Shown piece by piece: positions 14,095 to 62,655 of a DNA stretch of 64,000 bases; the stretch's first letter is position 1; each line of letters starts with the position of its first letter. The position numbers and the translations under genes are program-made. The stretch is from Macrostomum lignano (lineage: Eukaryota), in contig NIVC01000606.1 of NCBI GenBank assembly GCA_002269645.1, positions 449,231 through 513,230 on the forward strand. Direction: 5' to 3'. Below the pieces are notes generated by a model. That model saw nothing but the letters and a program-made list of their open reading frames with translations. It searched no databases and was not told the origin of the DNA.

Positions 14095-15068
14095 ACGGCG
14101 ACAGTAGATAGTAGGGTGACAGTAGGGTGACAGTAGGGTGACAGTAAAGTGACAGTAGAGTGACAGTAGAGTGACAGTAGGGTGACCAGTAGGGTGATAG
14201 TAGGGTGACAGTATGACAGTAGCGGGTGATAGTAGGTGACAGTAGATAGTAGGGGTGACAGTAGGGTGACAGTAGGTAGGGTGACAGTAGGGTGATAGTA
14301 GGTAGGGTGACAGTAGGGTGACAGTAGGGTGACAGTAGGGTGACAGTAGGGTGACAGTAGGGTGACAGTAGGGTGACAGTAGGGTGACAGTAGGGTGACA
14401 GTAGGGTGACAGTAGGGTGACAGTAGGGTGACAGTAGGGTGACAGTAGGGTGACAGTAGGTAGGGTGACAGTAGAGTGACAGTAGAGTGACAGTAGGGTG
14501 ACAGTAGGGTGACAGTAGGGTGACAGTAGGGTGACAGTAGGGTGACAGTAGGGTGACAGTAGGGTGACAGTAGGGTGACAGTAGGGTGACAGTAGGGTGA
14601 TAGTAGGGTGACAGTAGGGTGACAGTAGGGTGATAGTAGGGTGACAGTATGACAGTAGCGGGTGATAGTAGGTGACAGTAGATAGTAGGGGTGACAGTAG
14701 GGTGACAGTAGGTAGGGTGACAGTAGGGTGACAGTAGGTAGGGTGACAGTAGGGTGACAGTAGGGTGACAGTAGGGTGACAGTAGGTAGGGTGACAGTAG
14801 GGTGACAGTAGGTAGGGTGACAGTAGGGTGACAGTAGGTAGGGTGACAGTAGGGTGACAGTAGGGTGACAGTAGGTAGGGTGACAGTAGGGTGACAGTAG
14901 GTAGGGTGACAGTAGGGTGACAGTAGGGTGACAGTAGGGTGACAGTAGGGTGACAGTAGGAGGACAGTAGGGTGACAGTAGGGTGACAGTAGGGGGACTG
15001 TAGGGTGAGAGTAGGGTGACAGTAGGGTGACAGTAGGGGGACTGTAGGGTGACAGTAGGGTGACAGTA
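14095..15068. repeat. 11-bp minisatellite (GTGACAGTAGG)
   Basis: About 85 units. A variant block at ~14210-14290 recurs at ~14648-14725. Confidence 0.95.
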
Positions 15069-17756: not shown

Positions 17757-19362
<1,606 letters not shown>

Positions 19363-20324
19363 CTTCTATTCCTAATAATTTTGATTTAGCTCGGTTTTTA
19401 CTTATTTTTTGCCAAATTGGAAACAGAAATTCAGAGCGGTTCGTTCTAGGCAGGAAGTCACGCGCCCCGCCCCGTCCTGCTGCGGCATTCAGGGCGACAT
19501 GATGAAGCTGCAGCATGCTCAGCCTCTTCAAAAAACAGAAACCCTCTCCGCCGCAGTCCCGCTTTCACTCGGAGGCTGCCTGGCCGGAGAGAATAGAGGC
19601 CAAGCACGCAGCCTCCCAGCAGCCGCATCTTCATCTCTGCCGCATGCAGCCAAGAAAAGCATTGGGACTGAGTGTGAAAATTCCTCATTTCACTCTCCCA
19701 TGGCTATTGCGGGTGCCTCTAAGCCTGTCTCGGCCTGGCGCTCCCGTCGCTTCCTCATTAGAGCGGTCAGGGGCCGTCGGGCAGGAGAAGTCACTTATAG
19801 GAGGAGAACCGGGCAGAGATGAAGACGGGAGGCTGGAGAATAAAAAAGCACGAAACGCAACTGGGATTTGATTTCAGCGGGGCGGTCAGCTGTAGTAGCC
19901 GGGCGCCACTTCTCCCATGCCAAGACGGAGGGTATCAGTTCTGACTTGGGTGAGAGGCAGGCTGGAACCCGTTGCAAAAGTGGAAATTGCGTTTCCTGTG
20001 TTGCTGAACTGGCCCTGCCTCCCTTCCAAGACGATGGGCGCGCTCTCTTCTAGAAGAAATAATAGGCAAAGTACCTACATGTATAGGTCTGCGGTCTGCT
20101 GCCGGGGAAAAAATCGCTACAATGCCTGGGGTTTTTCGTGCGATTTGTTAGCTCCATTGTGGCCAATATAGCTAATTTTGGCTTTGTTGAGACTACAGAA
20201 GTCGCTGTTAGTTAAGACTTCTTGACTTGCACTTCTAACCTCCCCGTTCAGATCAGTTCCATCTACCTTTCTCTCTTTGTAGCCCCGCGTCCGCCTTCAT
20301 GTCGCTATACACATCCTTTAGCCC

Positions 20325-24369: not shown

Positions 24370-25045
24370 AGCTAGAGGGGCAGGGGTGCTAGAGGGGCAG
24401 GGGTGCTAGATGGGCAGGGGTGCTAGAGGGGGCAGGGGTGCTAGAGGGGCAGGGGTGCTAGAGGGCAGGGGTGCTAGAGGGGCAGGGGTGCTAGATGGGC
24501 AGGGGTGCTAGAGGGGGCAGGGGTGCTAGAGGGGCAGGGGTGCTAGAGGGGCAGGGGTGCTAGATGGGCAGGGGTGCTAGAGGGGCAGGGGTGCTAGAGG
24601 GGCAGGGGTGCTAGAGGGCAGGGGTGCTAGAGGGGCAGGGGTGCTAGATGGGCAGGGGTGCTAGAGGGGGCAGGGGTGCTAGAGGGGGCAGGGGTGCTAG
24701 AGGGGCAGGGGTGCTAGATGGGCAGGGGTGCTAGAGGGGCAGGGGTGCTAGAGGGGCAGGGGTGCTAGAGGGGCAGGGGTGCTAGATGGGCAGGGGTGCT
24801 AGAGGGGGCAGGGGTGCTAGAGGGGCAGGGGTGCTAGAGGGGCAGGGGTGCTAGATGGGCAGGGGTGCTAGAGGGGGCAGGGGTGCTAGAGGGGGCAGGG
24901 GTGCTAGAGGGCAGGGGTGCTAGAGGGGCAGGGGTGCTAGATGGGCAGGGGTGCTAGAGGGGCAGGGGTGCTAGAGGGGCAGGGGTGCTAGAGGGGCAGG
25001 GGTGCTAGAGGGGGCAGGGGTGCTAGAGGGGCAGGGTGCTAGATG
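24370..25045. repeat. 17-bp G-rich minisatellite (GAGGGGCAGGGGTGCTA)
   Basis: About 40 units with G-run length variants. Confidence 0.95.
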
Positions 25046-27845: not shown

Positions 27846-30098
27846 AGTCCTTGGCCTCCCAAAAAATTTATAAGAAACGCGTAGTTTACCTACTATTAGA
27901 GTAAAATGATTGTATAAGTTAATTCCCTGAAGTAATTTTACTCAAGTTCAAGTTATCGCTATTTTAAACAGTTTTCTGAGGTGCTCATGTTTTAAGCACG
28001 AATCTCCAGTTCTAAGGAGAATTTTCCCTCACAGCCGCTGCCTATTTGCATTTCCCCAACTGTTTACCTACAAGTCCGTGACGCCAAGACTGCATAAGCT
28101 AATTTAGCAGTTCCAGCCAAGGCAGTAATAAAAATGGCCAATCAATATTTGACAAACCGACAGGGCATCCAGTTTGGCAGATCGGGTTTCAAGCAGAAAA
28201 GAAATGGGAAAGGCGCCGCTGCAGCCCCTGAAATCCCTCGATCTGATCAATGAGTTTATAATTCTGGGGAGGCCTCGGAACTCCTCTGGACCAGCCCTCT
28301 GTCTTTTCTTGGCTGGCCATTTTACCAATGAACGATAGAGATGAGATGAGTAATCAATCAGATCAGCTGACCGGCTATTCGAGCTGTAGTCAATAAATCA
28401 ATGACTAGCATGCCGGGGCATTAACATACGTGTTTAGAGTTTATTAAACAATCCAAATTCAAGAACTGCGTGCAGGTCTTGCTGACAGACGGTTCAATTA
28501 TAAGCTCACAGAATACTAATTAGCTGCCGAGGCATCTCGCTATTTGAATAAAAGTTAGTTACTCCTGCCGTTTACCCAAAACAGCTGGTAAATGTTGGCT
28601 GGCAAATGGCCGTCTGGCAATCGGTGTAGACTCAAGAGAGCACACATCAAAGAGATCAATAATGATGGAAAAAGAGTTTAAGCAACAGCAAGTTTCTCGT
28701 GACCCATAGGATGCAAACAGCAGTGAAATTCTACAAGGCTTTGCGCTGAACAAAACAGGCAATTATTAACAGATTATTATTATTATTATGTATGAAATTA
28801 TGTAATATTACAAATAATGCTTCAACTTACTGTTATATATAGAATCAGTAAGGTTATAATACACAGAAGTTTTGGTACGATCGCTAACATAAATATTGCA
28901 ACAGGGCTGCTGTTACTATTAGAAATTTATTAATAAATTCGTGTATAAAATTATTGTATTACAGCATATTTTATTGTAGAATCTTATTTACAAAGAGAAA
29001 CCAAGTCTAAATTAGGATAGAAACAGGGGACGCACAACAGGAGAAATATTTTCATGCTGAAAAATTTCGAATTTACAAATTTGAAAACCGACCCAGATGC
29101 CAAAGTGGAGTGCATGCAGGCTGTGCTAGGACCCTGGGGTAGAAATGTTAATGAAATAATGGAATTATTTGTACTACTGGCATATGTTGGCATCAATGGC
29201 CAATTGACAGCCCAATATCTCCAAAGTTTGTCAGTATCCTGTGAAACATTTGCAGCCTTCCGACTGAATTTGCAATGCTATCTAAAATCATTTTGCAAGC
29301 TGCTAGGATTGCTTCAGTTTAATACGGTAGGACTTGAAGGGTCAAAGCATTAAATATGACAATCAACAGGTGCTCAGGTATTATATAGTGCGCAATAGTA
29401 CAGCTGCTCTCCTATATGTTACAACAGGTAAATATTGATAATGTAAATAAGCCGCATTATATAACACAGCAGCAAATTCAACTAGTTAACAGGTGCGGCA
29501 AAACAGAGCACAGGCAGTTAAAGACAAGAACTTAAGAAACATCCAATAAACAGAAGAGCCTGCAAGCTGCTAGTTAAATCCGCCTTAATCCTGCAAGAGT
29601 CAAAACGTAAAAACAAGTGAAAACAAAAACAGAAAAAACACAGGTAAAAATTCGGTTACACTATCAGCAACAAACCGAGAGCTCCCAGGTGATGCCAGTT
29701 ATGTGATACAGTAGTATTAAATAGCATATTGTAACTAGATGCGCGGTAAATCGCTGCCTTTATCAAATAACAAAAACTAGCAAATTAATAAATAATAAAT
29801 CGAAGCCATTCACAGATTCTATGATAATAAACTAGACAGGCCGCCCAGCAAATTTGCGTGTAAGCTACTTTCAATTCAGTAGTAAGAGTTAATCAAGCAT
29901 TTTGATGTATTTTTAGGACAAGGTTCATTTGTTGCCTTTCAATTCCCCTACGTGGAAAATCATTTTTTTGTTTCTTTTCACAAAATAGCTTACAAACTCT
30001 TCCTTGCTACTGAATTGACAGTAGGTAAACTGCTATACATGTAAATAGCCAATCTAGTTATTATCATATCTGTGGAAATTCCTACAGACATCTTCAGG

Positions 30099-31217
30099 CT
30101 AGGAAGCGTCTTCGCCGCCGCTTTTTCCACCGCCGCCGTTGCTAACGGCAACTGCAGGCGCCGATTCTGCGGCCGCCGCCGGCTCTGCCTCCGTTGCCGA
30201 CTTGTCCTCCTCGTCCTTGCCGTCGGCTGCAGCAGCCTCCGGCTTTGAATCCGTCGCATTCGAGCCCGCCAGCTCGTCACCTTCAGCGTTGTCTTCGGCT
30301 GCCACCGCCGTGGGAGCCGCGGTTTTGCTGTCGCCTTCGGCGCTGCCCGACTGCGACTCCGCATCCTTGCCGGCCCTGGGAGGAGTCTTGTCCTCCTTGT
30401 CGGCGGTACCGTCGGGCTTGTCAGCAGTGGAAGCTGACGCCGCAGTCTCTTCCTTCGCCTGCTTCTCCTCCTGGGTTCCGTCAGCGGCCTTCGGCTGCGA
30501 CTGTGGCGGCGGAGTCGGCGACTTATCCTTGACGACTTTTTCGTCGCGTGGCTTCGCCGAGTCCGCAGGTTTGGCCGGTGCTTCAGCCGGTGCTTCAGCC
30601 GGCGCTGCCGCAGCCGTTTCGCTAGAATCTCCCGCCTTCGCGCTGCTGCCGTCCTTGTCTTTGTTGTCCTTGGCCGGCGCTGCCGGTTTCTTCTTGTTCT
30701 TCTCGTCTTCTGCTTCCACTGCAACGGCTGCCGAGCTTGCTGTCTTGGAATTTGTTGCCGCCGTCGTCTCGGCCTTCGTTGCCGCCGCCGCTGCTGACGT
30801 AGCCGGTTTCGCTGCCGCTGCCGACGCCGCCTTACCCGGTGGCGCCGTAGATTTCGGCGCAGATTTGGCGCCAGTCGCAGCCGGATCAACCAGTTTAGCC
30901 AGGCCCCCGCATTTGGTCTCCTCAAAGCTGACCTCGCCGCTCTCCAATCGCACAATGAATTGGTGCACCGAGCGCACCTGGCCAAGTGGATCATCTGGCT
31001 GGCACGGCATCGAGGATAAGAAGCAGTGGGCCTCGCGGAACGGCGCCACGATGTGCACCAGGCTGTTGTCAGCGGACGGCCTGTACAGGTATTTCCTACC
31101 GTCGATGGCGTGCTCTTCAAAGTGATAAATGTTGAAGTTGCTCAAGTTGATGGAGTGAAACTTTTTAGAAAACAGCTCCGCTAAGCTTAGCTTGCTCTGC
31201 TTGGCTGGCGTTGCCAT
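30099..31217 (-). CDS. 372-aa protein: ~95-aa globular N-terminal domain (putative divergent cystatin/stefin fold) plus acidic Ala/Glu/Asp/Lys-rich disordered tail
   Basis: Long GC-rich ORF in an AT-rich context. The N-terminal domain is clearly paralogous to 33148-33456. Confidence 0.8.
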   Translation of the reverse strand: MATPAKQSKLSLAELFSKKFHSINLSNFNIYHFEEHAIDGRKYLYRPSADNSLVHIVAPFREAHCFLSSMPCQPDDPLGQVRSVHQFIVRLESGEVSFEETKCGGLAKLVDPAATGAKSAPKSTAPPGKAASAAAAKPATSAAAAATKAETTAATNSKTASSAAVAVEAEDEKNKKKPAAPAKDNKDKDGSSAKAGDSSETAAAAPAEAPAEAPAKPADSAKPRDEKVVKDKSPTPPPQSQPKAADGTQEEKQAKEETAASASTADKPDGTADKEDKTPPRAGKDAESQSGSAEGDSKTAAPTAVAAEDNAEGDELAGSNATDSKPEAAAADGKDEEDKSATEAEPAAAAESAPAVAVSNGGGGKSGGEDAS

Positions 31218-37579: not shown

Positions 37580-37775
37580 CCCCCCTGATTTACACTGGCC
37601 ATGCCCATGCGACTTACTTTTTTAACAAAAATGCGACTTACCTGTAAAAAAAAACCTAACGCAATTTTGGGTAAACGGCAGGAGTAACTATAACTGTCTT
37701 ATTAGGGCTGAATGCCTCGTCATCTAATTAGTAATACGTCTATTCTTTAGGCTGGGCATTTTTGCGACTTACCCC
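37580..37775 (+). repeat. Dispersed repeat carrying a 66-bp 28S rRNA-derived segment (37669-37734)
   Basis: Homologous to ~38699-38895 (CCCCCTGATTTACACTGG ... CTATT.TTT.AGG.GGGCATTTT). The insert matches the LSU rRNA sequence as I recall it at 55/66 positions, ungapped. Confidence 0.8.
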
Positions 37776-38698
37776 TGGTCCACCACAATTTACGGTGGCC
37801 AGATCGGCCAGCAGTTGCGCATTTATGGTCAATGGTATTATGCGGAAGAGGGTAGGGTAGGGTGTGGTAAGGTTAGACACAGACAGCAAGTTTGTTTGAG
37901 TAGTGTGCTTGATTGAACCTTGTAGTTGTAGAAATAAAATTTGCAGTTCATTTCAAGAGAAGCTTATATATTTTTGTGCATTTATTTTTTTGTGTACTTC
38001 TTTAAATTAAGAATATATACAATAAATAGGCTACAGTGTGAAGAACAGGTGAATCATGTTCTAAGAAGTATAGTCACAATATGCTAACAATAAATGTTTA
38101 TTTAAACAGATTGCACTGTTTACTAATAAAAAATAACAAATTGCTATTCTCCCATGTAGTATTTTATTATATAAAATTATTTCTATTTGACCTAAATAAT
38201 ATTATAAATTATATTAAAGCTAAAAATTAAGTAGGCCTATCTAAAAGATGCAACATAGAACATGTTAACATAGTAATATAGGTATAGTACTAATTAGCTG
38301 ATTAGTCATTTAGTCTTAATGAGACAGTTAGTTACTCTTGCCATTTATCCAAAACTATAATGCAATACCAAAAAGTTACAAAATTACAATGGAAGGTTGG
38401 ATGCCTTTTGTCCACTTATAGAGGAAATAGAGGAATAGAGGAAATAGACGAAAAGAGAGGAAGAAAGAAAAAAAGTAGAAAAAAATAAAAAAGAAGAGGA
38501 AAGAAGAAAAATCAAAAAAAGAAAAGAAAAACAAAAAGACTATATCACAACTAGAAGCAACTAAGTTGCAACTAGATGAACTTAAGTTGCAACTGGAGGC
38601 AAGCAAAGTAATATGCAATTTTTGGGGAAAAAACTAAGTCATAATTATTAACTAAGTAAAATTTTGAAATTGGAAATATATTCATGCATATATATATG

Positions 38699-38895
38699 AC
38701 CCCCTGATTTACACTGGTTGTGCAACTTATTTTTTGACCAAATTGTGATTTACCTATAAAAGAAACCTAAGCAAAAATAACATTACATTTGTCATTAGGA
38801 TAAATGATAAAAAACTATGACTATTATTAAAGTTAAATGCTTTATCATCTAATTAGTACTATCTATTTTTTCAGGTGGGCATTTTAATCACTTAC
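38699..38895 (+). repeat. Older, AT-drifted second copy of the 28S-carrying repeat
   Basis: Shares flanks with 37580-37775; retains AACTATGACT and AAATGC...TCATCTAATTAGTA. Confidence 0.65.
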
Positions 38896-40119
38896 TTTGT
38901 CTGGGCCCCTTGTCAGATAGCAAGATTACGAGCTAGCTAGGTCAGTTAGGTATTGTGCATATATGTATATATATCATTTTTTAATGCAACTATGAAGCAC
39001 AGTGATTCTAATAATGGTACATGCTTAGAGAATTGAGCACATACTACTATGTAGTGCATATAAAAATCTTAACCAAATTAAGTTTCTATTGCCTATGGTA
39101 ACTGATAGTTCAAATCATTATATAGAGATATAACCTAGTTATCTAGGAATATTGTCATGTTCCATAGCCTTATTGCAGCCTATAGCCATTATTGCAGATA
39201 GCGTCTAGCATGGATTAGCCTTATTGGAAAAAGTTTTTAAATGGTAGATGACTATCACTTTTTCTTTATTCTTTCCTCTTTGTATAATTTTCAATTGCTC
39301 TAAAGCCAGCTAAGCCAAAGGCTACATTGCTAGTTATGGGCCATTTAGTTTCACCAGGGATAACTTTGAATTTTTGATAGACAATAAAGCCATAAGATTA
39401 TAAATGTAGTTGAATTTTAATTTTGCTAAAATTTATATTAGAGTATATTGCATTACTATATTTATTCTCTACTATATATAATAGAAAGATAATTGTTGAA
39501 CCATTAATCCATTATTTGCCAGCTAATATTTAAAGTACAATTTTTTGTTATTTCAATGTGGTAATGCCACATAATTTAGTAGTTTAAACAAAACATGTCA
39601 AAACAATTGCTAGCACTATTTATTTTTGCTTATTTATATTTTTCTAAAAATCTATTGTATTTCTCAAAATTTATTTTCAATTAATTTTTTAATTAAATTT
39701 TAGATAAAAAAATGCAAAACACTAGCACTAGCTTTTATACAATACAATACAAAGTCTATATAAATGATAAAGAAATGGTATAAATGTAGAAATATGGATT
39801 GTCCCAAAACAGCCACATTTAAAATGTAGCCTATATAGTAGCACTGGCTATATAACTTATTTAGACAGTTATATCAGACAATCACAGACAGTGCCAGATT
39901 TAAGGGTTTTTTTTCAAATTTTGGAAAGGATTTGATTTTTGAAGGGCTGTGTTTAGTTTAAGCTTGGCCTCCATCAAACAGTTTCTCAATCTGTGCCTAA
40001 TCAAGATCTACCAGTGCACCGGTTTTTCAGCTTTATGCAGCATATTTGCATATTAGAAAAGCTATAATTGAAACCATTTCAGATTTGGCATTTTCTGTTC
40101 TGGCATTTTGAAAACGCCA

Positions 40120-43100
40120 ATGGATAATATAGGTAAGCATTTATTTGGATACATACTGAAAGTGTAAATAGTAGAGCACTGTAACTTCTGCTAGACGACA
40201 ATGTTTTGTCATCACTCAATTTAGCCGGCGCAGGTGCGGTGACACTACGCGTGCTGTCGTGGAACACTGAGGGGCTCAACTCGGAGCAGCTGGCAGCGCG
40301 CACAGAATCTGTGGCCAACTGCATCCTGGCGCACGATGTTCACGTGGCCCTGCTTCAGGAGGTCGTGCCCGCCAGCTTTGACCAGCTGCTTCAGCGGCTA
40401 AGCAACTATCGCCTGCTGCCGGGCGGTCACACAGACCATTATTTTGTGGCCACCCTGATCAAAGATTCTGTGCAGTGCCTGGACTGTCGGGTCCTGCCGT
40501 TGGACAATTCTAGAATGGGCCGCTGTCTGCTGGCCTGCAATGTGCAGCTTGGCGACAAGCAGGCCCGGCTGTTCAACTGTCATTTGGAATCTGGCGCTTC
40601 TCAGACTGCCGAACGGCGCGCCCAGCTGGTCACCTGTCTGCGCGCCATGACCTCGTCTGCCGCGACCCGCTCCCTGCTTGGTGAGCGCAAACAATTCAAA
40701 AGTTCTCTCCGATTTCTAAGAAACTTTTTAAGAGCAGCATAGCCTACGTATTTCTATGTCAAGGCTTACAGGGGGAATTGCTATAATAATGTCAAGGCTT
40801 ACAGGGGGAATTGCTATAATGTCAAGGCTTACAGGGGGAATTGCTATAATAATGTCAAGGCTTACAGGGGGAATTGCTATAATAATGTCAAGGCTTACAG
40901 GGGGAATTGCTATAATAATGTCAGGGCTCACAGAGGGAATTGCTTTAATGTCAAGGCTTACAGGGGGAATTGGTATAATAATGTCAAGGCTTACAGGGGG
41001 AATTGGTATAATAATGTCAAGGCTTACAGGGGGAATTGCTATAATAATGTCAAGGCTTACAGGGGGAATTGCTATAATGTCAAGGCTTACAGGGGGAATT
41101 GCTATAATGTCAAGGCTTACAGAGGGAATTGCTATAATAATGTCAAGGCTTACAGAGGGAATTGCTGAGATGTCAAGGCTTGAGTGGAATTGCTGAGATG
41201 TCAAGGCTTGAGTGGAATTGCTGAGATGTCAAGGCTTGAGTGGAATTGCTGAGATGTCAAGGCTTGAGTGGAATTGCTGAGATGTCAAGGCTTGAGTGGA
41301 ATTGCTGAGATGTCAAGGCTTGAGTGGAATTGCTGAGGTGTCGAGGCTTGAGTGGAATTGCTGAGGTGTCAAGGCTTGAGTGGAATTGCTGAGATGTCAA
41401 GGCTTGGGGGAATTGCTGAGGTGTCAAGGCTTGAGTGGAATTGCTGAGATGTCAAGGCTTGGGGGAATTGCTGAGATGTCAAGGCTTGGGGGAATTGCTG
41501 AGATGTCGAGGCTTTAGTGGAATTGCTGAGATGTCAAGGCTTGGGGGAATTGCTGAGATGTCAAGGCTTGGGGGAATTGCTGAGATGTCAAGGCTTGGGG
41601 GAATTGCTGAGATGTCAAGGCTTGAGTGGAATTGCTGAGGTGTCAAGGCTTGAGTGGAATTGCTGAGATGTCAAGGCTTGGGGAACTGCTGAGATGTCAA
41701 GGCTTGAGTGGAATTGCTGAGATGTCAAGGCTTGAGTGGAATTGCTGAGATGTCAAGGCTTGAGTGGAATTGCTGAGATGTCAAGGCTTGGGGGAATTGC
41801 TGAGATGTCAAGGCTTGGGGGAATTGCTGAGATGTCAAGGCTTGGGGGAATTGCTGAGATGTCAAGGCTTGAGTGGAATTGCTGAGGTGTCAAGGCTTGA
41901 GTGGAATTGCTGAGATGTCAAGGCTTGGGGGAATTGCTGAGATGTCAAGGCTTGAGTGGAATTGCTGAGATGTCAAGGCTTGAGTGGAATTGCTGAGATG
42001 TCAAGGCTTGAGTGGAATTGCTGAGATGTCAAGGCTTGAGTGGAATTGCTGAGATGTCAAGGCTTGGGGGAATTGCTGAGATGTCAAGGCTTGGGGGAAT
42101 TGCTGAGATGTCAAGGCTTGGGGGAATTGCTGAGATGTCAAGGCTTGAGTGGAATTGCTGAGATGTCAAGGCTTGAGTGGAATTGCTGAGATGTCAAGGC
42201 TTGGGGGAATCGCTGAGATGTCAAGGCTTGGGGGAATTGCTGAGATGTCAAGGCTTGAGTGGAATTGCTGAGATGTCAAGGCTTGAGTGGAATTGCTGAG
42301 ATGTCAAGGCTTGAGTGGAATTGCTGAGATGTCAAGGCTTGAGTGGAATTGCTGAGATGTCAAGGCTTGGGGGAATTGCTGAGATGTCAAGGCTTGGGGG
42401 AATTGCTGAGATGTCAAGGCTTGAGTGGAATTGCTGAGGTGTCAAGGCTTGAGTGGAATTGCTGAGATGTCAAGGCTTGGGGGAACTGCTGAGATGTCAA
42501 GGCTTGAGTGGAATTGCTGAGATGTCAAGGCTTGAGTGGAATTGCTGAGATGTCAAGGCTTGGGGGAATTGCTGAGATGTCAAGGCTTGGGGGAATTGCT
42601 GAGATGTCAAGGCTTGAGTGGAATTGCTGAGATGTCAAGGCTTGAGTGGAATTGCTGAGATGTCAAGGCTTGGGGGAATTGCTGAGATGTCAAGGCTTGG
42701 GGAATTGCTGAGATGTCAAGGCTTGAGTGGAATTGCTGAGATGTCAAGGCTTGAGTGGAATTGCTGAGATGTCAAGGCTTGAGTGGAATTGCTGAGATGT
42801 CAAGGCTTGAGTGGAATTGCTGAGATGTCAGGTAAATAGGATTCTGTCAGTAGACTTCTTGCAGACTCAATGTTTACAGAGTACGCAACTTTGACGATTG
42901 ATAAAAGTCTTAATTAGTCCGAAGAATCCCAATAATAAAACAAATTAGCGATGCAATTCATCCAACTTGGAAAAACGCGGGTGCCAATTTGGCATCCGAG
43001 GTCCAAATTCAGCATGCTATTAAAGCCGATGTATCTTGACACACTCAGAAAAAAAAATTATGACAAAAATAAATGAATGACCAGCTTAGCTGATAAACTT

Positions 43101-43502
43101 TATGTTCTAATTATGTTCAAATCAGAATCTGTTCGCCATTCCGCTATAACAAAACCATCCGATTCAATAAAACAAACAGGCGGCGATTTCAATATAATGT
43201 GCAGCGACGAGCTGAAATCGGCGGGCGGCCTGCCCGATACGGTCTCGGACGCGTGGGAGGCCAGCGGCCGGCCCAAAGGTGAAAAGTACACGTGGGACGC
43301 AGCTAAAAATTTGAACGCTGCCCGGCGTTGCGGCCGGCGCTGTATTGGCCGTTTGATGCGGTCCAGTTACCGGCCCGATCGCCTGCTAGTGCGCGGCATG
43401 ACAGTTGATAGGTTCGAGCTGTGCGGGCGGGACAGGCCGCCAGGCCTGCAGATGCACACTTCTGATCACTACGGCCTGCTGGTCAGTCTAGTCCTGGATT
43501 GA
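40120..43502 (+). CDS. TDP2: Tyrosyl-DNA phosphodiesterase 2 (EEP nuclease family); exons 40120-40132, 40225-40680, 43180-43502
   Basis: Motifs LSWNTEGL, LLQEVV, SRMGR, NCHLES, GGDFN (made by the phase-1 splice 40681-43179), YTWD, PDRLL and SDHYGL. Candidate first coding exon ATG GAT AAT ATA G|GTAAGC has the matching phase 1. Confidence 0.9.
40755..42830. repeat. 2-kb compound minisatellite in TDP2 intron: ~33-36-bp unit grading into 27/28-bp units (GAGATGTCAAGGCTTGAGTGGAATTGCT / ..GGGGGAATTGCT)
   Basis: Visible; both parts share ATGTCAAGGCTT...GGAATTGCT. Confidence 0.97.
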
Positions 43503-45014
43503 GGCTGAATGCTTTTGCAGTTTCCCAGAGGTCATATGAACACCCACCTCCCCTAATCTTTCTCGCGCAGGGTGAGTTACTGGTAAGCACCCTTTAGACC
43601 GCCAACTTCGCTCGTAGAGGTAAAAAACGAAAATGTACTTGAAAAAAGTGCAATATAGAGAGAGAATCGGTTTTCTAATTTTGGCTATCTAGATTTGTCT
43701 GCGACTTTAACACCGAATACCTACCTGCCAACCATTGCTTTGTACAATCGCCAGTGCTTTTGTCTGTCAGTCTCATTAATACTAATGCCATTGTCTTTTG
43801 TCATATTGAGCTGACAAATTTTTACGGGGATTTTTTAGGACACTTATCCCATCTTGTGGATAGATGATCTTTGGTCACCATGCTCGAATAGCAATTCTTT
43901 ACTTGATTGTGTTTGGCTTGTAGTCTGTGGGAGACTGCAGCTTGGAGTGGGAATTCTTATCTTGATGGCCCTAATGATTAACTTATAAACTGACAGAACT
44001 ACTAAGAAGCTGCCAGCTCATCTTGCTATTGATTAGTGTGCTTTAATTCAAAATTAAACTCATCATTTTCGAATCGCTTACTCTGCATGTCCTTTGTTTC
44101 TAGATTATTTAGATTAGACGAGCTTAAGCACCAGGTGCTTTATTATTATAAAATTATAAACTTCAGATTCACCGATGATTCGCCCGCATCGAGCGTTGGC
44201 CCGTCTGTATTTCCCCTGTCGCGTCTTAAGGATTCTTTGTATAAAATGCTCCATCATCATAAGATTAATTCTAATAAAAGTATTATATTCTTTGCTTGTA
44301 GCAGTTTATATTTTCAACAAAGAACTGAGATGAAGTTCTTTTGCTTTTGCTCGACTTCGCTCTCTATATTTACCTGTAAAGACTGTCTTTTTATAAATAT
44401 TTCTGCGAGAATAGAAATGAAATTCTCTAATTTTATTGCTGCTTGTTCATATAGAGAAGCAGAAATATATCTGCTGGTGCAACTTAACAGCGTGTAAAGA
44501 TTTTTTGCTTTTATAATTTAAAGCTACTTCTTACTATGAAAGAATTAAAATAACTAATTAAAAAACTTTAACTGCTTTATTATTTACTTGTTTTGCGCAT
44601 AGACAAGCCAAGTGGAAGAACGCTACGTTTGATTTCTTAGAAATAAGCTGAAAGCAGTCAAGGAACCTTTATTTGTAGTACCGCAAAGCGCTGAAAGAGG
44701 TTTTGCCATAGACAATTTCGGTTGAGAAAAAACGATCTCTTCTCTTCCAGTTATTTTCTAGGAAAATCGAGTTTAGCGCCCCTTCCACTGCATTTCCATG
44801 ATTTTAGATGAATACCTGCTTAGTGTATTTAGCATCAGCACAAGTGAATAGCATGCGTATGTACGTACATGGAATGGATAGCACATTTGTTAGTTATACT
44901 GGTATAATAAAATATGACATAAGTATAGCTCGCATTAACTAATGTGTAAGCTATTAAGAATAAAGCAGTAAAACTTATAACTTAATTAACAAGCGGAAGC
45001 GGACAGGGGCCGTA

Positions 45015-45120
45015 GCAGAGTGGAAAGTTAGGGCCGCTGTACACTCCTGTGCCTGTGCGTACGTACCTGCGCGCTTATGTGCCACTCGCCGGTTGTGTGA
45101 CAGTGTTGCTTAAAGTGTGC
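45015..45120 (+). mobile_element. Fragment of SINE family B
   Basis: AAGTTAGGGCCGCTGTACACTCCTGTG..CTGTGCGTACGTA..CTCGCCGGTTGTGTGACA matches 16733-16800 and 61730-61860. Confidence 0.6.
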
Positions 45121-45425
45121 TAGGGTGCGCAAGTCCCTGGCCTGTCTTTAACTAAAAACATTAGAAGCGGATACAGCTGGAGCTACAGGGCATTCGATGA
45201 AAAATCGGAACAAATCAGGCCAAGGTGCTGGTGGTGGCCTCATCAAGTGGAGGCCCAAGCAGCACGTTATAAAGGCATAATAATGATCAAAGAAAATAAC
45301 AAAATGTGATATTCTGAGTAATGAAACGCTGCAAAATTGCGAAAAATGATTAATCAGAAGCTGCTCATTTAAAACTCGAATCTAGCTACTTAAAAATGGA
45401 GGGGCCCAGTAGTCTGACAAGGTCA

Positions 45426-47000
45426 TTATATATTAACCATGATTTTTTCCACCGGCTTGCGAGTCAGATTAGGCACCTGGGCATTGTGGGCCGCGTAGCC
45501 AAGCGGCAGAAGCAGGTGCACCTTCTCGTTGGGCGGCCGGCCGAGCAGTCGGCGAAGCGCTGGCCCGGCGTTCATCGGCGTGCTGGTTAAAGTGCACAGG
45601 CCGACATTCTGCACAGCGGCCAGGAATAATCCGGCTGAGATGCTAACCGAGATTTCCGAGTAATAGTGCTGCCGCTTCTCCTCCCGACCGCTGCGCCAGC
45701 CGTGCACCTGTCCAATTGCATTTCAAGGTGGTTATGGGCTATCCAATATTTATCTTTCAGTGGGCTGCTATCTCTCAGTTCTGCAGTGCCTGAGCTACCT
45801 CTCTCACGTCTCAGTTCAGATTGAAAAGAATCAATGTACATACAGAATTCTAATTTTGTCCAAAGAGAGGTTTAACCCACTTTTTAGTGTTTTTTATCGC
45901 TCTGTAAGAAATTTGATTCGCATCCTTTTCTTGCTACTCGTTAGTAGCAAGGCAACCATCACACAAAAAAGTGCGTCGAGCACTAACTTGCGTACCTGTC
46001 GCATAAGCACAACAATAACCGGAGCCTCAGTAAGATACGGCTTCTCCCAGCTAGTCCGCAGTTTAGCCAAGTCCGCCTTCCACTCTGCGCTCATCCTTCT
46101 GGCGTAGTTAATCTCCTCTTCCTCTTCCACAATCTCCCGGATGCGCCGCTTCATCAGCTCGTTAGTGACGCACACGTAGGTCCAGGGCTCGGTGTGGGCG
46201 CCGCTGGGCGAGGAGCCGGCCGCTGTGACCAGCAGCCGCACCAGTTCGGGGTCCACCGGCCGCTCACTGAACTGGCGGCACGAGCGCCTGCGGCTCAGCA
46301 AGTTGGCAAAGTCGGTCGCCCGTTTCAACATCTCGGATTCGGAATAGGCGACATTGGAATACGGCACCAGGCTGAGTTCCGCCTCCTCACCAGCTGACTG
46401 CTCCGAGCTGTCTTTGTCCGTCTTGTCTTCAGATTCCCCAGCTTCTTCTTCATCTTCGTCGTCATCTTCTTCCGGATCGACTGATTCATTCACAACCGGG
46501 GGGCGGCCTCGCCGACGCCTGAGCTCGCTTTGTGGCGCCTGCTTTAAAGTCGCTGCTGGCTTTGATTTCTGCTTCTGCTGTTGCTGCTGCTGCTTCCGCG
46601 CTGGCATTCTGCCTTCCCCTCGCTGCTCGTCGGAGTCCTCCTCGCTATCATCCTCTTCGTCCAGCATCTCAAACAGTTTGCGCTCCAGCTCGGCTGTCCG
46701 CTTCTGCGTAGCCTTCTGGTCGGCTTGCTGACTCTTCTGCTTCTGCTTCTCGGGTTGCTTAGAATTCTTTGTCTTCTGCGACTTTGAGCCCACGCTAAAT
46801 GGTATGTCGCTGGGCATTGTAGCAGCGGACAGGCCGCCCCTGTACCCTGGCATGAGCCTCTCGTCCATGGGCATGTTCGGCACGGCGGTCCTGCGCTGCT
46901 GGAACAGGTGCATCACTAGAAAGCCGATGAGCGAGCCCAGCACGGCCTGCAGCGTGGTGGAATCCTTGAACAGACTCCACAGTGTGAATGCGTCCGTCAT
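45426..47000 (-). CDS. IYD: Iodotyrosine deiodinase (FMN nitroreductase superfamily), 428 aa; exons 47000-45996, 45707-45426
   Basis: N-terminal membrane anchor; RRRSCRQFS, SPSGAHTEPWTYV, EEEEEINYARRM, W.KPYLTEAP, RQ|VHG, HYYSEISVSISAG, TSTPMN, GRPPNEK, LLPLGY, RKP. Phase-0 GT-AG intron 45995-45708. Confidence 0.95.
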
Positions 47001-48303
47001 GGTTGGCAGGTTCCAACTAGGCAGTCAAATATTACTGGAGTTGCAATTCAATTTGTTTGCTTTTTAAGCATGAACAAGATCAGGCCTAGTTTTACCCTTA
47101 TTTGAATGTTTACTATCATCATATATGCAAAACTTGCTAAAAACCTAAGCATTTACATACTTCAACAAATTAATTATACTATGAAATACAATAGTTAGAG
47201 CCAGAGTACCAGAGGTTGTCTCAAAAGTTTTTCAGGACAGAGGTCACCATTTTTTACACAAATGCTCAAGGAAGCTGGAAGTTTAGATATTATCTAAGAG
47301 AACTTTAACAAAGTCTTTAAGAAAGGGTAGTGTTAGTTTTATGCAATTTCAATGGTTAAGTTCAAATATTATTAACACAATTTTTGCCCAAAATATTCCC
47401 CATCACTGTTGCTGTCACAGATATTCACCATTCATGAAGATGCACTGTTAGTAGTGCTCAATCAGCTTGTCAGAGTCTCTCAAAAGTGGCATCTATCTGG
47501 CTTAGGTAATGCTCTACTGTAACTGCAGCTACAGTTATAGGAAATTTAGGGTAGCACTTTTTTGAGCACAATTAGGTTATAGATTGTGGCTATGGAAATC
47601 TTGCCTAGTAGCAGATAAAGTTATGGATTATAGATTTGGAGCACCTAATGTAATTTCTAAAGTAAATTGAAAATTATTTTTATATGCAAAAAACTATTTA
47701 CCTTTTTTCATTTTAAATTTTATATTTTTGGCTAAATAAAAAGATACATTATTGCCTTTTGCATATAAAATGTATTTATATTTATTGTACCAAACTAGGC
47801 CTTAAAAGCCATTAAATTTGAAAGTTTTCACTGTTTGCTTGATTGCTTTTGCTTTGGCTTCAAATTTTTGCTTTTTGGTTTTTGAAATCAATGATTTTGT
47901 TAATTTTGTTGATTTATAATATGGCTATAGGAAATTTTGGAATATGGAGATTTGACTATCTAGAAAATAACAAATTACAGCTACAGGGATAGCATAATAA
48001 AATTTAGTATGGCTATGGTTATAAAGGTACAGAGGTATAGCAATAGAACACTAGGTTTAGGGATTTGCTGTTGGCACTAATCATTTTCTAAGGAGTCAAG
48101 AAAAAGATAAAGATTTACAATAGTTTTAGAAAACAAAAGCTAAACTCTTTTACTTTTACTTATATATAAGCAACAGCATAAGGATATGCATTTTCTCACA
48201 GAATGAAAGGTTTCTAGTGCAAAGTGCAGCCCTTGTTTAAGACAGTATTTGCAAACAATGGAGTTGATCAATGGCATTATTATAATTAAACTATAGTAAC
48301 TAG

Positions 48304-48710
48304 TAGGGGTCGGACGTGATCACAATTGTGATCACGATTTTGTGAATTCACGACCATTTTTTTCACGATTGTTATTTCCTTGAAACCCGTTCACGACAGT
48401 CGCGAATTTCCGTTTTATTACATTTTTATTAGAAGTATAACTTTTCTACTTGGTTTACCAAAATATGTGAACACAAATGTGTAAAAGAGTAATAAATTTT
48501 AATTTTGTTGACTTGACAGCATTACCAAGTAGCTATTATCAATTTATAAATATTTCTTTTCTTGTTTTGTTATTTTCAACACTTGTAACTTACGAGCTCA
48601 AAAACGTGTATGCAAATATAAATTCACGATCACGATCACGATCACGCCTGACTTTAAAAATTTCACGAAATTTCACGCCCGACCAAAATTTTCTGCTCAT
48701 CCGACCTCTA
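48304..48710. mobile_element. hAT-type MITE with TAG.GGTCGGA.G TIRs and perfect 8-bp TSD
   Basis: TAGGGGTCGGACG / CATCCGACCTCTA. GTAACTAG on both sides (48296-48303, 48711-48718). Interior rich in TCACGA repeats. Confidence 0.88.
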
Positions 48711-48723
48711 GTAACTAGGGCCT

Positions 48724-48889
48724 AATATTGAATATATAAATATAGTAGTTCTATAGTTGGGAACATTCTATATATACCCTGGAAAAAATTAATTAATTTT
48801 TTAGAATATACTAATATTATATGCCGAATATCCCAAATATCCCAACTATAGAACTACTATATAAAAAAATATTTATATATTCAATATAT
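48724..48889. repeat. Foldback element with ~39-bp inverted arms
   Basis: AATATTGAATATATAAATATAGTAGTTCTATAGTTGGGA vs TCCCAACTATAGAACTACTAT...ATTTATATATTCAATAT. Confidence 0.7.
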
Positions 48890-49062
48890 TATATTATATT
48901 ACCTTACACTAAGCTTCATATTTTCAATTTGAAATGTTATTAATAATGTGTAGATAACTATTATAATTGTTATTAGTATTGTAATTTTCAATTTTTAGCG
49001 TATGTAACACAAAAAGTAGAAAATCACTTTTTGTATACTAACATGTATGCTAATTTCTTGAG

Positions 49063-49608
49063 TAGTGATGGACCAAATGTAGATTTTTGCAAGTTTGCAA
49101 GTACAAAAAATTCCAAATCTGAATATCCAAATATGTTTCCGAATGTAGATAAAAGTAAAAAGTAAACGGCGGCAGTAACTATGACACCTTTCTGGACAAA
49201 AATGCCTTGTCATCTAATTAGTAATCGTATTAGTGCTATACATTAATTTACTGACAAGATTCAATCTAATCTCGGGCTTATACTATATCCATCTAGTATC
49301 TGAATTGAATTCAACTCAGAATTGAACTCAATTCTTTTATATCTAATCTAAGTACAATTACTAATACTAACTGACATTTTTGTGCAATTTGATAACTTCA
49401 CCATGTAGGCCTATAGTGCATATAAAATCTGTTGCATTTGCATTTCAAAAAAGATTAAACTTAAACAATGATTATTACAATTAAATGTTTTTGTGACTTT
49501 TACATTAGCATAATTTTGTTTTGGTTTTTCAATTTTTTTATATTTGGAAGCACATTTGGAAATTCGGATAGTAAAATTTCCAAATCCAAAAATTAGGACC
49601 CATCACTA
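49063..49608. mobile_element. hAT-type MITE with TAGTGATGG TIRs; carries a 28S-derived segment at 49162-49224
   Basis: TAGTGATGG / CCATCACTA. Flanks TTCTTGAG and TTGTTGAG (7/8 TSD match). Confidence 0.75.
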
Positions 49609-59800: not shown

Positions 59801-62655
59801 TGTACATTAGCCAGTCCACTGAAATGTACATGGCAACTTTAGGCTGGAGTTCCAAGAAAGGCAATAAAAATTGAGGCAGGGTATGGGAGCAGTGTGGAAA
59901 GGTGCATTTGAGGGTTTAGTTGGGGTAATAAAAGCCAATAAATGATTCTTATTTATATAAATATATTAAAATTCTTCTGTTTAACTTACTACTGAACTGA
60001 AAGTAGCTTACACGAAAATGTTCTAAGTGGCCCATCTAGTTATTCTAGTAATCTATGTTCTAATCTATTAATAATCTAAATTATCTAGATCTAGGCCTAG
60101 ATATGATAATTATCTTGTTTTTAATTGAAGCTCTAAATTAATGATTAGGCCTAATAATTATTTATTGTATAAGAAGAATGGCTAAAACTGAATTTATTTT
60201 AGATTTAGCCCACACCACCCCAACCATACAAATTTTGTTAAATAAATTTGCAATTTGTATCAGGTACAAGAAAACTCGCCAGGTCACAAGGCAGGCCTAG
60301 AGGCATTCTTTGACTTCATCATTGCTATTGGAAATACACGATTAGTAAGTTAAGCTCTATGTGAATTGCCTGTTTAATAAGCAGCAAATAGTTTATTCAA
60401 AATTTATTAAATCAAATTGCCTGTCTAAACCAAATTTCAGAATGAGGACAATGAGAACCTGAGAGACCTGCTAATCCAGCACAAGGACAAGCCTGTGCGC
60501 ACTCTGGTGTACAGCAGCAAGACTCAGAGCTGTCGCGAGGTCACCCTGGTGCCGTGTGAAGGCTGGGGCGGCCAGGGCCTATTGGGTGTCAGTATTCGAT
60601 TCTGCTCATTCGACGGGGCCAACGAGAACGTTTGGCACGTGATGGACGTGCAGCCGAATTCGCCTGCGGGTCTGGCTGGACTGCAGTCTGACACCGACTA
60701 CATTATTGGGGCCGACACTCTGTTGCAGGTCTGTTCTTTTTTGCCTTCTGCGGCACTGTCAGATCATTCTGTACTGACAGAGACACAGTCAAATCATTCT
60801 GTACTGACAGAGGCACTGTCAGATCATTCTGTACTGACAGAGACACTGTCAGATCATTCTGTACTGACAGAGACACTGTCAGATCATTCTGTACTGACAG
60901 AGACACTGTCATATCATTCTGTACTGACAGAGACACTGTCAGATCATTCTGTAGTGACAGAGACACTGTCAGATCATTATGTACTGACAGAGACACTGTC
61001 AGATCATTATGTACTGACAGAGACACTGTCAGATCATTATGTACTGACAGAGACACTGTCAGATCATTCTGTACTGACAGAGACACTGTCAGATCATTCT
61101 GTATTGACAGAGACACAGTCAAATCATTCTGTACTGGCAGAGATACTGTCAGATCATTCTGTACTGACAGAGGCACTGTCAGATCATTCTGTACTGACAG
61201 AGACACTGTCAGATCATTCTGTACTGACAGAGACACTGTCAGATCATTCTGTACTGACAGAGACACTGTCATATCATTCTGTACTGACAGAGACACTGTC
61301 AGATCATTCTGTACTGACAGAGACACTGTCAGATCATTATGTACTGACAGAGACACTGTCAGATCATTATGTACTGACAGAGACACTGTCAGATCATTAT
61401 GTACTGACAGAGACACTGTCAGATCATTCTGTATTGACAGAGACACAGTCAAATCATTCTGTACTGACAGAGATACTGTCAGATCATTCTGTACTGACAG
61501 AGGCACTGTCAGATCCCTCTAGCAAACAAAAAGTCAGGCTTAGGGGCACGTAGCCCAGTGGACTAGCGCTGCGCTCTGTTGTGCCAGCGGCCCAGGCTCG
61601 ATTCCAAGTGCAGTCACATTGATTTTGGGCTAAATTGGAATTTTGGCTTGGCTCCGCTCGTGCAATTAACGCCCCTGAGAGCCAACTCCAAGGCACAGTG
61701 AAGTGTACATGCCTAACGATAAAATAAAGTAAGGGGCGCTGTACACTCCTGTGTGAGTGTGCCTGTGCGTATGACTGCGTACGTATCCGCGCGTTTGTGT
61801 GACTGCTCAGAGGAGTCGGCGTAATGGGCAGTAATGCCTCTCGCCGGTTGTGTGACAATGTCACTTAAACTGCCGCATACTGAGTCGGAATAGCTCTGGC
61901 AACCCTCCGCAGGACTACGAGGATCTGATCACACTAATCGAGGCCCACGATGGCAAGCCGCTGAAGCTGTACGTGTACAGCACTGTGTCGGACTCCTGCC
62001 GCGAGGTGACGATTACACCCAACTCTGTCTGGGGCGGCGAAGGCCTACTTGGCTGCGGCATCGGCTACGGCTATTTGCATCGGATCCCCACGAGGGAGCC
62101 GCCGGTAGATCAGCTGACTCCGTTGCCTAGCGACGTAATGCGCGCTCCGGCTAGCGACGGATTTACTGAGGTAGAAGTTCGAGTCTTCAACAATATACTT
62201 TTATTTGTACTTTTTAGGCTTTGTCAAACTGAATACTCCATCATTTCAACAGGTTTCTGTTAATTTTTTATTAGTGTATTAGTATATGTGGACTAGCCAC
62301 CCCCCCCCCCCCACGGGGAAGAGATAAAATTTTGAATTGCAGCAGTTTTAAAACCATCCAATTACCATTCCGATTTGGTCACCAGACTTGATTTGAAATA
62401 TTTCAGGTGCCGCTCAGTTCAGCCGCCGCCACGCCCAGTGCTGCCCCCGCCCCCGTGTCTTCACCGCTGCCTCCGCCGCCGCCGCCGCCTCCACAATCGA
62501 TGCCGCCGCCCACCTATGCGGCTTCTCAATCGCTGCCGTCACCGCCGCCTCCGCCGCCACCGGCGCCAGTTTCTGCGGCTTCTCCACTGCCGCCGCCGCC
62601 GCCTCCGCTGGTGCCGCCCGAGACTTCTACTGCTTCTCCGGCGCCTCCGCCACCT

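Follow-up and report, generated by a model that had tools for sequence, protein, structure and literature searches.

Locus, copies and module boundaries

The analysed window comprises the last 64 kb of the 513-kb contig NIVC01000606.1 of Macrostomum lignano (assembly GCA_002269645.1; contig coordinate = window coordinate + 449230) and consists of ordinary genic DNA, with AT-rich spacers between GC-rich exons. It carries five dispersed copies (c1 to c5) of a short module derived from the 28S ribosomal RNA (rRNA) gene, at the site targeted by the R2 retrotransposon and by I-PpoI. An original prediction, made from the nucleotide sequence alone, had described three of them (37669-37734, 38798-38858, 49162-49224) as dispersed versions of this site carried in repeats outside ribosomal DNA (rDNA). 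All three were found at these coordinates and the description holds, with no rDNA elsewhere in the window; the copy number did not stand, as the window holds five and c4 and c5 had been missed. The 28S consensus used there is correct, being equal to the 84-bp R2 target oligonucleotide of PMC12180492 and to the native large-subunit (LSU) rRNA of dozens of environmental eukaryotes. Positions are numbered from the R2 nick, which lies between TTAAGG and TAGCC, and three parts of the 28S stretch are distinguished: the left arm at -36..-15 (22 nt), the core at -14..+7 (21 nt) and the right arm at +8..+28 (21 nt). The copies, and the larger A-unit that surrounds two of them, are located as follows:

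c4: 28513-28581, minus strand; TTTT and module with core ACTTTTATTCAAATAGCGAG; unrelated flanks
A-unit around c1: 37581-37775, plus strand; about 190 bp, possibly up to about 280 bp, with the module central; common to c2
c1: 37665-37744, plus strand; TTTT, left arm 37669-37690, core 37691-37711, right arm 37712-37732, then AATACGTCTAT
c5: 38275-38354, minus strand; module alone in its own flanks; A-type core; profile E 1e-19
c2: 38700-38895, plus strand; old, heavily decayed A-unit; module 38794-38873, 28S-like part 38798-38858
c3: 49158-49237, plus strand; 28S-like part 49160-49224; own core ACCTTTCTGGACAAA; unrelated flanks

A search of the window with the 66-mer of the 28S site (nhmmer) gave E-values of 4.6e-10, 8.7e-8 and 1.8e-6, far above chance, and a profile built on the five copies retrieved no further copies in the window. 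When 227 kb of LSU-bearing contigs were compared with the window using BLAST, only the five modules were matched, over 60-80 nt each; it is therefore one 28S segment that was dispersed, and not rDNA in general. No LSU, rRNA or other RNA family was detected in the window with Rfam at the gathering threshold. For comparison, two homeologous contigs were used, NIVC01003586 (loci L001 and L063) and NIVC01000197 (loci L060 and L062), which are 87-98% identical to the window.

The module measures about 66-80 bp, its 28S-like part starting at -36 (GGGTAAACGG) and reaching at least +30 (AATTAGT) and about +33/+42 at most. In front of it, c1, c4 and c5 have TTTT in place of the GCGC of 28S, and in all five copies the 28S-like part is followed by A-(A/T/C)-T, where 28S has GAC; the right ends of all lineages read AGTA-(A/T/C)-T versus AGTGAC in 28S. 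The derived right end that had been noted for c1 and c3 is thus real, with both continuing AGTAAT(A)CGT, and a non-28S end extends to all lineages. As this end is common to all of them, and TTTT precedes c1, c4 and c5, a single origin of the module is indicated.

Outside the module, the flanks of c1, c3, c4 and c5 resemble each other no more than shuffled sequence does. A larger unit, of about 190 bp, is common to c1 and c2 only; for it, BLAST pairs 37581-37762 with 38700-38885 at 67.7% identity and the flank comparison scores 72 versus 18 for shuffles. Homology between c1 and c2 past roughly 200-280 bp was not significant, and a large tandem duplication was rejected on these grounds. The match between c1 and c5 (79% identity, BLAST) covers exactly the 80 nt of the module (37665-37744 versus 38354-38275). 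The module is thereby found in at least three unrelated contexts, namely in the A-unit (c1, c2), alone (c5) and in two others (c3, c4). Given these unrelated contexts, it behaves like the conserved central domain of non-autonomous elements, shared by the A-unit, c3, c4 and c5, the carriers of which are presumed mobile.

The genes of the window, identified in part by a Pfam scan of its large open reading frames (ORFs), include a G-protein-coupled receptor, a TDP2-like gene, an IYD-like gene, an RGS exon and a GRASP exon; two entries were located as follows:

30099-31217: ORF of 372 aa
45894-47000, minus strand: IYD-like (iodotyrosine-deiodinase-like) exon, 98% identity to M. lignano BOX15_Mlig026904g2

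The first exon of the IYD-like gene, which exists in three homeologous copies (g1 to g3), encodes a low-complexity, charged extension of about 200 aa between the N-terminal hydrophobic segment and the nitroreductase domain. Micro- and minisatellites are dense in the window (14110-15068, 17777-19369, 24371-25043, 41047-42830 and 60754-61515), among them (CTAT)x398, a 28-bp unit repeated 64 times between two TDP2-like exons and a 30-bp unit repeated 25 times beside the GRASP exon, and give rise to long spurious ORFs of up to 602 aa. A full-length long interspersed nuclear element (LINE) occupies 17216-21567 of L001 on NIVC01003586 (minus strand), its insertion point corresponding to window position 38632. 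It has an intact 1272-aa ORF2 (endonuclease, reverse transcriptase, RNase H), a 177-aa ORF upstream and a (TAAG)n tail, and close copies of it are fused into many M. lignano gene models in UniProt. As it is present in one homeolog and has no counterpart in the window or in NIVC01000197, it represents a recent insertion.

Arms, cores and their inheritance

Divergence from 28S is not uniform along the segment: the arms are kept and the core is altered. In c1, 1 of 43 arm positions and 9 of 21 core positions differ from 28S (Fisher p 9e-5), in c4 3/43 and about 11/21 (p 1e-4), and in c3 4/43 and about 10/21 (p 1e-3). The concentration of differences in the middle, as originally predicted, is thus statistically real in each of three independent lineages, and the counts given for it were reproduced, with 55 of 66 positions of c1 matching 28S and 7 of the 11 mismatches falling into one 9-nt patch (AGGTAGCCA changed to TTAGGGCTG), and with c3 matching at 23/24 and 22/24 positions on either side of the 15-mer ACCTTTCTGGACAAA. 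The remaining copy described, c2, is decayed as stated. Base composition does not explain the contrast, since the G+C content of the arms is no lower than that of the core. The arms are separated by merely 15-21 nt, and no copy in the window or in either homeologous contig retains the intact R2/I-PpoI/Pokey core CTCTCTTAAGGTAGC.

The core of c3 had been taken for an unrelated replacement, a view that had to be given up, as the cores are not foreign sequence. Compared with shuffles, the c1 core aligns to the 28S core with p of about 0.001, the c3 core weakly with p of about 0.04 and the c4 core weakly with p of about 0.07; the likeness of these three core types to each other is at chance level. 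In alignments read by hand, the c1 core corresponds to the 28S core with a TT insertion in TTAAGG, a deletion of TA at +1/+2 and four substitutions, and the c4 core has TTATT as in c1 and keeps TAGC, having lost two C and the TG at -13/-12.

The cores are also inherited. A third core had been assigned to c2, where we find that c1, c2 and c5 carry one and the same variant, ACTGTCTYATTARGRCTRA (A-type), which c5 has despite its own flanks and opposite strand; the core of c1 shows fewer differences to that of c5 than to any other core. The change of TTAAGG to TTATT by insertion of TT is common to the A-type copies and c4, and c5 and c4 share two more characters, the loss of -13/-12 and the change of CATC to CAGC. 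The proposal that each copy was cut and misrepaired separately is accordingly not supported, and inheritance of a single core variant from a master repeat, named with the original prediction as an outcome that would overturn it, applies in part: c1, c2 and c5 share one core, and c3 and c4 have different ones.

Pairwise comparisons place the contrast between arms and core on the lineages from which the copies were made. Between c1 and c4, the arms differ at 2/43 and the cores at about 9/23 positions (p 7e-4), versus 7/43 and about 4-6/21 between c1 and c5 (hand counts) and 12/43 and 8/21 between c1 and c2. Within the A-type subfamily decay is even, with 16-28% of arm and 21-38% of core positions differing between c1 and the other members by hand count, and the arms of c1 are nearer to those of c4, which has another core type, than to those of c2 and c5, which have its own. 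As the old copies c2 and c5 decay evenly across arms and core, the contrast arose in source lineages. A master-copy picture is the simplest reading of these sequences: c1 and c4 would be relatively recent products of two arm-keeping sources, and c2 and c5 older products of the A-source, decaying neutrally. Selection may have preserved the arms of the sources, targeted damage may have cost them the middle, or both may have acted.

All five copies occupy orthologous positions in NIVC01000197 and NIVC01003586 and would thus predate the divergence of the three homeologous regions. Copy c1 is identical in L060, L062 and L063, and c3 has one and the same core in the three homeologs, with L001 and L060 sharing both this core and the right arm. 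In the latter two loci about 90 nt are absent at c3, including the 5' half of the left arm; the exact lengths are 94 nt in the window (49080-49173) versus 4 nt in L001 (7811-7814) and L060 (8450-8453). The junction shows AAA-G microhomology (CCAAATG / GTAAACGG), which fits a microhomology-mediated deletion, and the alternative that the left arm was refreshed in the window was dropped in favour of this simpler deletion in L001 and L060. Copy c4 is present in L062 and L063. Its core shows four clustered differences between window positions 28535-28556 and L063 14965-14985 (ACTTTTATTCAAATAGCG versus CCCTTATTCAAATGGCG); neither the arms nor about 40 nt of flank show any difference, and the surrounding region has 97.6% identity. 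The probability of this change under a Poisson model is about 0.002, which is suggestive but was calculated post hoc. Counted by hand over all copies, differences between homeologs show no clear excess in cores compared with arms.

The mode of decay differs between copies. Relative to the c1 unit (37581-37775), the changes in the c2 A-unit (38700-38895) and in c5 (38275-38354) are nearly all G>A or C>T. No CpG of the c1 unit has escaped mutation in c2, whereas about 10 CpGs persist in the c1 unit itself, which holds the best-preserved copy, c1, and lies in a region of 34% GC. This suggests that decay was methylation-driven or otherwise transition-biased, on some repeat copies and not on others. 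In M. lignano, 5-methylcytosine occurs at a low level and DNMT1 and DNMT3 are conserved (PMC11292947), which makes CpG decay of old repeats plausible.

The retained CpGs bear on the idea that the module serves the host, either as a regulatory DNA site or as a family of small RNAs that mimic or are antisense to rRNA, with c1 and c4 functional and c2 and c5 as pseudogenes. Both c1 and the whole A-unit keep all CpGs and are identical in three homeologs, and antisense transcripts of the two 22-nt arms would pair perfectly with 28S rRNA. The identity between homeologs, however, amounts to zero differences in 80 nt at 2-4% divergence, which is not significant, and c3 lacks half an arm in two homeologs. 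There is no consistent promoter or terminator across the copies and no Rfam match, and folding is no better than that of shuffled sequence: relative to dinucleotide shuffles, the five copies have minimum free energy z-scores between -0.66 and +0.55, on the basis of which a structured RNA was rejected. The H69 stem of 28S is broken in c1. We consider a host function very improbable.

Class membership and a proposed link to R2 biology

The copies were examined for the features of known classes of mobile elements. ORFs of at least 130 aa are absent within 1.5 kb of the copies, no reverse transcriptase was detected when the large ORFs of the window were scanned with Pfam, and six-frame translations around the copies, inspected by eye only and without Pfam, revealed no reverse-transcriptase-like motifs. 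Neither half-modules nor R2 remnants were found anywhere in the window, and Rfam searches with E of up to 10 yielded nothing at the copies and no ribozyme or R2 element. As to a short interspersed nuclear element (SINE), no tRNA, 5S or 7SL match was obtained at or near the copies in Rfam scans at gathering threshold or by E-value; at c1, c4 and c5 only a fixed TTTT, or AAAA on the opposite strand, adjoins the module. Neither inspection by eye nor a repeat search detected convincing target-site duplications at the copies, all of them old, and no terminal inverted repeats as in miniature inverted-repeat transposable elements (MITEs) bracket the copies in the three regions, where inverted matches are of 7-11 nt and at chance level. 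The module is classed as rDNA-derived and carried in interspersed repeats, and it lacks the RNA polymerase III (Pol III) head of a SINE as well as the defining features examined for a MITE, for an R2 copy or its short internally deleted elements (SIDEs), and for an intact target.

In metagenome contigs, a scan for both arms with the derived AGTA end gave zero matches. The left arm with A at -25 was found in 57 contigs, mostly native LSU genes and several of them with R2 or intron insertions; none contained a Macrostomum-like module. An A at -25 is a weak derived character, because it is a common native variant paired with ACTCTTTT. The loci L010 and L054, which had been considered as a poly(A) tail joined to a 28S leader, were dropped, as they proved to be a native, AT-rich LSU that contains an intron. 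In L003/L005/L028, L044, L048 and L030, pieces of the 28S region in question occur in isolation, without LSU context by Rfam; among them are a -33..-4 fragment that three contigs carry in identical form, -36..-6 pieces duplicated in tandem, and a 51-bp tandem array with units starting GCGGGTAAACGG. In L004, L012 and L026, R2-type ORFs are located at TTAAGG of native LSU.

The copies could in principle be a neutral relic, i.e. the result of one 28S insertion outside rDNA followed by local duplications, with the contrast between arms and core reflecting a few complex mutations in a T-rich stretch and no function at any time. All copies lie within 21 kb of one locus, with c1, c5 and c2 within 1.2 kb, no transposon hallmarks were found, and change among homeologs is, in a small sample, roughly neutral. 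Against this, the contrast recurs independently in three lineages with p of 1e-3 to 9e-5 each, the duplicated unit is sharply and identically bounded in unrelated flanks, unlike a segmental duplication, and the arms of c1 and c4 are nearly identical at cores that differ by about 50%. We therefore regard a neutral relic as unlikely.

The extent of the arms can be compared with the contacts of R2 proteins on their target. The N-terminal domains of R2 give upstream Myb/ZnF1 DNase footprints at -37..-25 and -21..-15, a D-clade R2 has a downstream footprint at +8..+15 and +17..+20, and the footprint of the full-length Bombyx R2 protein extends over about -40..+20 (PMC11204384). The upstream footprints coincide with the left arm (-36..-15), and the downstream one is overlapped by the right arm. 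Once released by their ribozyme, R2 RNAs retain up to 36 nt of the 28S sequence upstream, and junction-proximal variants are propagated via this RNA (PMC3774820); some R2 families have diverged 28S-like sequence in their 3' untranslated region (UTR), two flatworm R2 families no longer have target specificity, and several NeSL elements of Schmidtea target 28S (PMC5035012). From sequence comparison, the module boundaries and the pattern of conservation would fit a sequence used by an R2-type system.

As the best explanation, which may well be right and which we hold tentatively, we propose that the copies are relics of one old short-interspersed-repeat family, the 28S-derived module of which goes back to a single capture and the arms of which were used by an R2/NeSL-type system. 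The module would have been founded when 28S rDNA flanking the R2 site, from -36 to about +33/+42, was captured once. In the source lineages, both arms stayed nearly unchanged and the 21-nt middle gained substitutions and small indels, so that cores differ from source to source and are common to the copies made from one source. The arms would have been retained as parts used by a retroelement system specific for the 28S site, the left arm representing the upstream Myb/ZnF footprint together with the up-to-36-nt 28S leader of R2 RNA, and the right arm overlapping the downstream footprint and the primer-annealing sequence; the middle would constitute the nick and junction region, in which variation may be tolerated and propagated. 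After insertion, copies decay evenly, as c2 and c5 show, and those of the window would be inert relics older than the homeolog divergence.

Several points weigh against this proposal. Its basis consists of three or four independent insertions, all from one 64-kb locus, and selection on the arms was deduced from a tree conflict among five sequences, in which some of the shared G>A and C>T characters may be transitions that arose in parallel. Evolution of the modules among homeologs is roughly neutral. No target-site duplication, terminal inverted repeat, poly(A) tail, Pol III head or nearby reverse transcriptase/endonuclease ORF was found at the copies, and none of the five has the RNA structure that was looked for by folding. 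Finally, M. lignano is not listed in the accessible supplementary tables of PMC13188248, and R2 is only presumed to exist in this species.

The last point applies equally to endonuclease scarring, according to which the modules or their source copies kept their arms simply through being young and the middle was mutated by repeated nicking or cutting by an R2-type or homing endonuclease and error-prone repair, or only copies with cleavage-resistant cores avoided being interrupted by insertions. Changes indeed cluster at the cleavage positions, with the TT insertion at TTA^AGG and the TA deletion at +1/+2 of the A-type core; they comprise indels and transversions and not the G>A and C>T of ordinary decay at this locus, the arms equal the R2 binding footprints, and 4 positions of the c4 core, but none in its arms and flanks, differ between homeologs (the post hoc p of about 0.002 given above). 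Against scarring, the core variants are inherited, as c1, c2 and c5 share one and the c3 core is the same in three homeologs; the arms of c1 are closer to c4 than to c2 and c5, which calls for conserved sources and not merely young copies; and the window holds no half-module or R2 remnant. On balance, scarring appears improbable as the origin of the cores. A further variant sees the module as mimicking the R2 landing site under selection, with binding arms kept and a cleavage-dead middle, acting as a decoy or sink, or the remnant of a non-autonomous partner mobilised by R2. We judge this to be quite improbable; were it true, the cores would record past endonuclease activity.

If subfamilies with conserved arms are genuine, as our proposal holds, they would provide a natural data set on the target positions needed by R2-type proteins, a possible case of target-site mimicry and a route for 28S-specific elements, or their ends, out of rDNA in flatworms. 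As R2 proteins are under development for transgene insertion, pseudo-targets with intact binding arms would also be relevant to off-target considerations.

Comparison with known systems

In full-text literature, no description was found of dispersed R2-site repeats, in Macrostomum or elsewhere, of an R2 element of M. lignano, or of a repeat with conservation that tracks R2 footprints while the nick region varies. Interspersed repeats that incorporate 28S sequence do exist, and SINE28 is derived from the 3' end of the mammalian 28S. It contains 28S rDNA fragments (PMC10946416, Table 2) and resembles the module as a transposable, interspersed repeat that has incorporated a fragment of 28S rDNA (Longo et al. 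2015). A review of rDNA-derived transposable elements covers SINEs and terminal-repeat retrotransposons in miniature (TRIMs) with 5S promoters, Pokey intergenic-spacer repeats and SINE28, and lists no element built on the R2/I-PpoI site (PMC10946416).

With R2 elements, the module has in common the same 28S segment, its start at -36 matching the 36-nt RNA leader, the propagation of junction-proximal variants, the presence of diverged 28S-like sequence inside some R2 families and the existence of target-nonspecific flatworm lineages (PMC3774820, PMC5035012). It differs in having no R2 body (ribozyme, ORF, 3' UTR), in joining upstream and downstream 28S with only about 20 nt between them, and in being located in unique genic DNA, not in rDNA. 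R2 SIDEs are likewise minimal derivatives that keep only the parts needed by the R2 machinery (PMC3414825); in contrast to the module, which is dispersed and has neither ribozyme nor 3' UTR, they retain both, measure hundreds of bases and insert in the 28S site.

The CORE, V, Deu, Ceph, Meta and MESC/Nin SINE superfamilies are characterised by a highly conserved central domain (PMC4824008, PMC4758252, PMC11481361). As in these, a domain of about 60-80 nt is conserved between otherwise unrelated elements, and the copies decay after insertion. Unlike them, the module has no detected Pol III head or LINE-like tail, it is of 28S origin, which has not been reported for those superfamilies, and it consists of two arms around a free middle. 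The module is thus closest to SINE central domains in its behaviour, and to the 28S leaders and 28S-like UTRs of R2 elements in the origin of its sequence.

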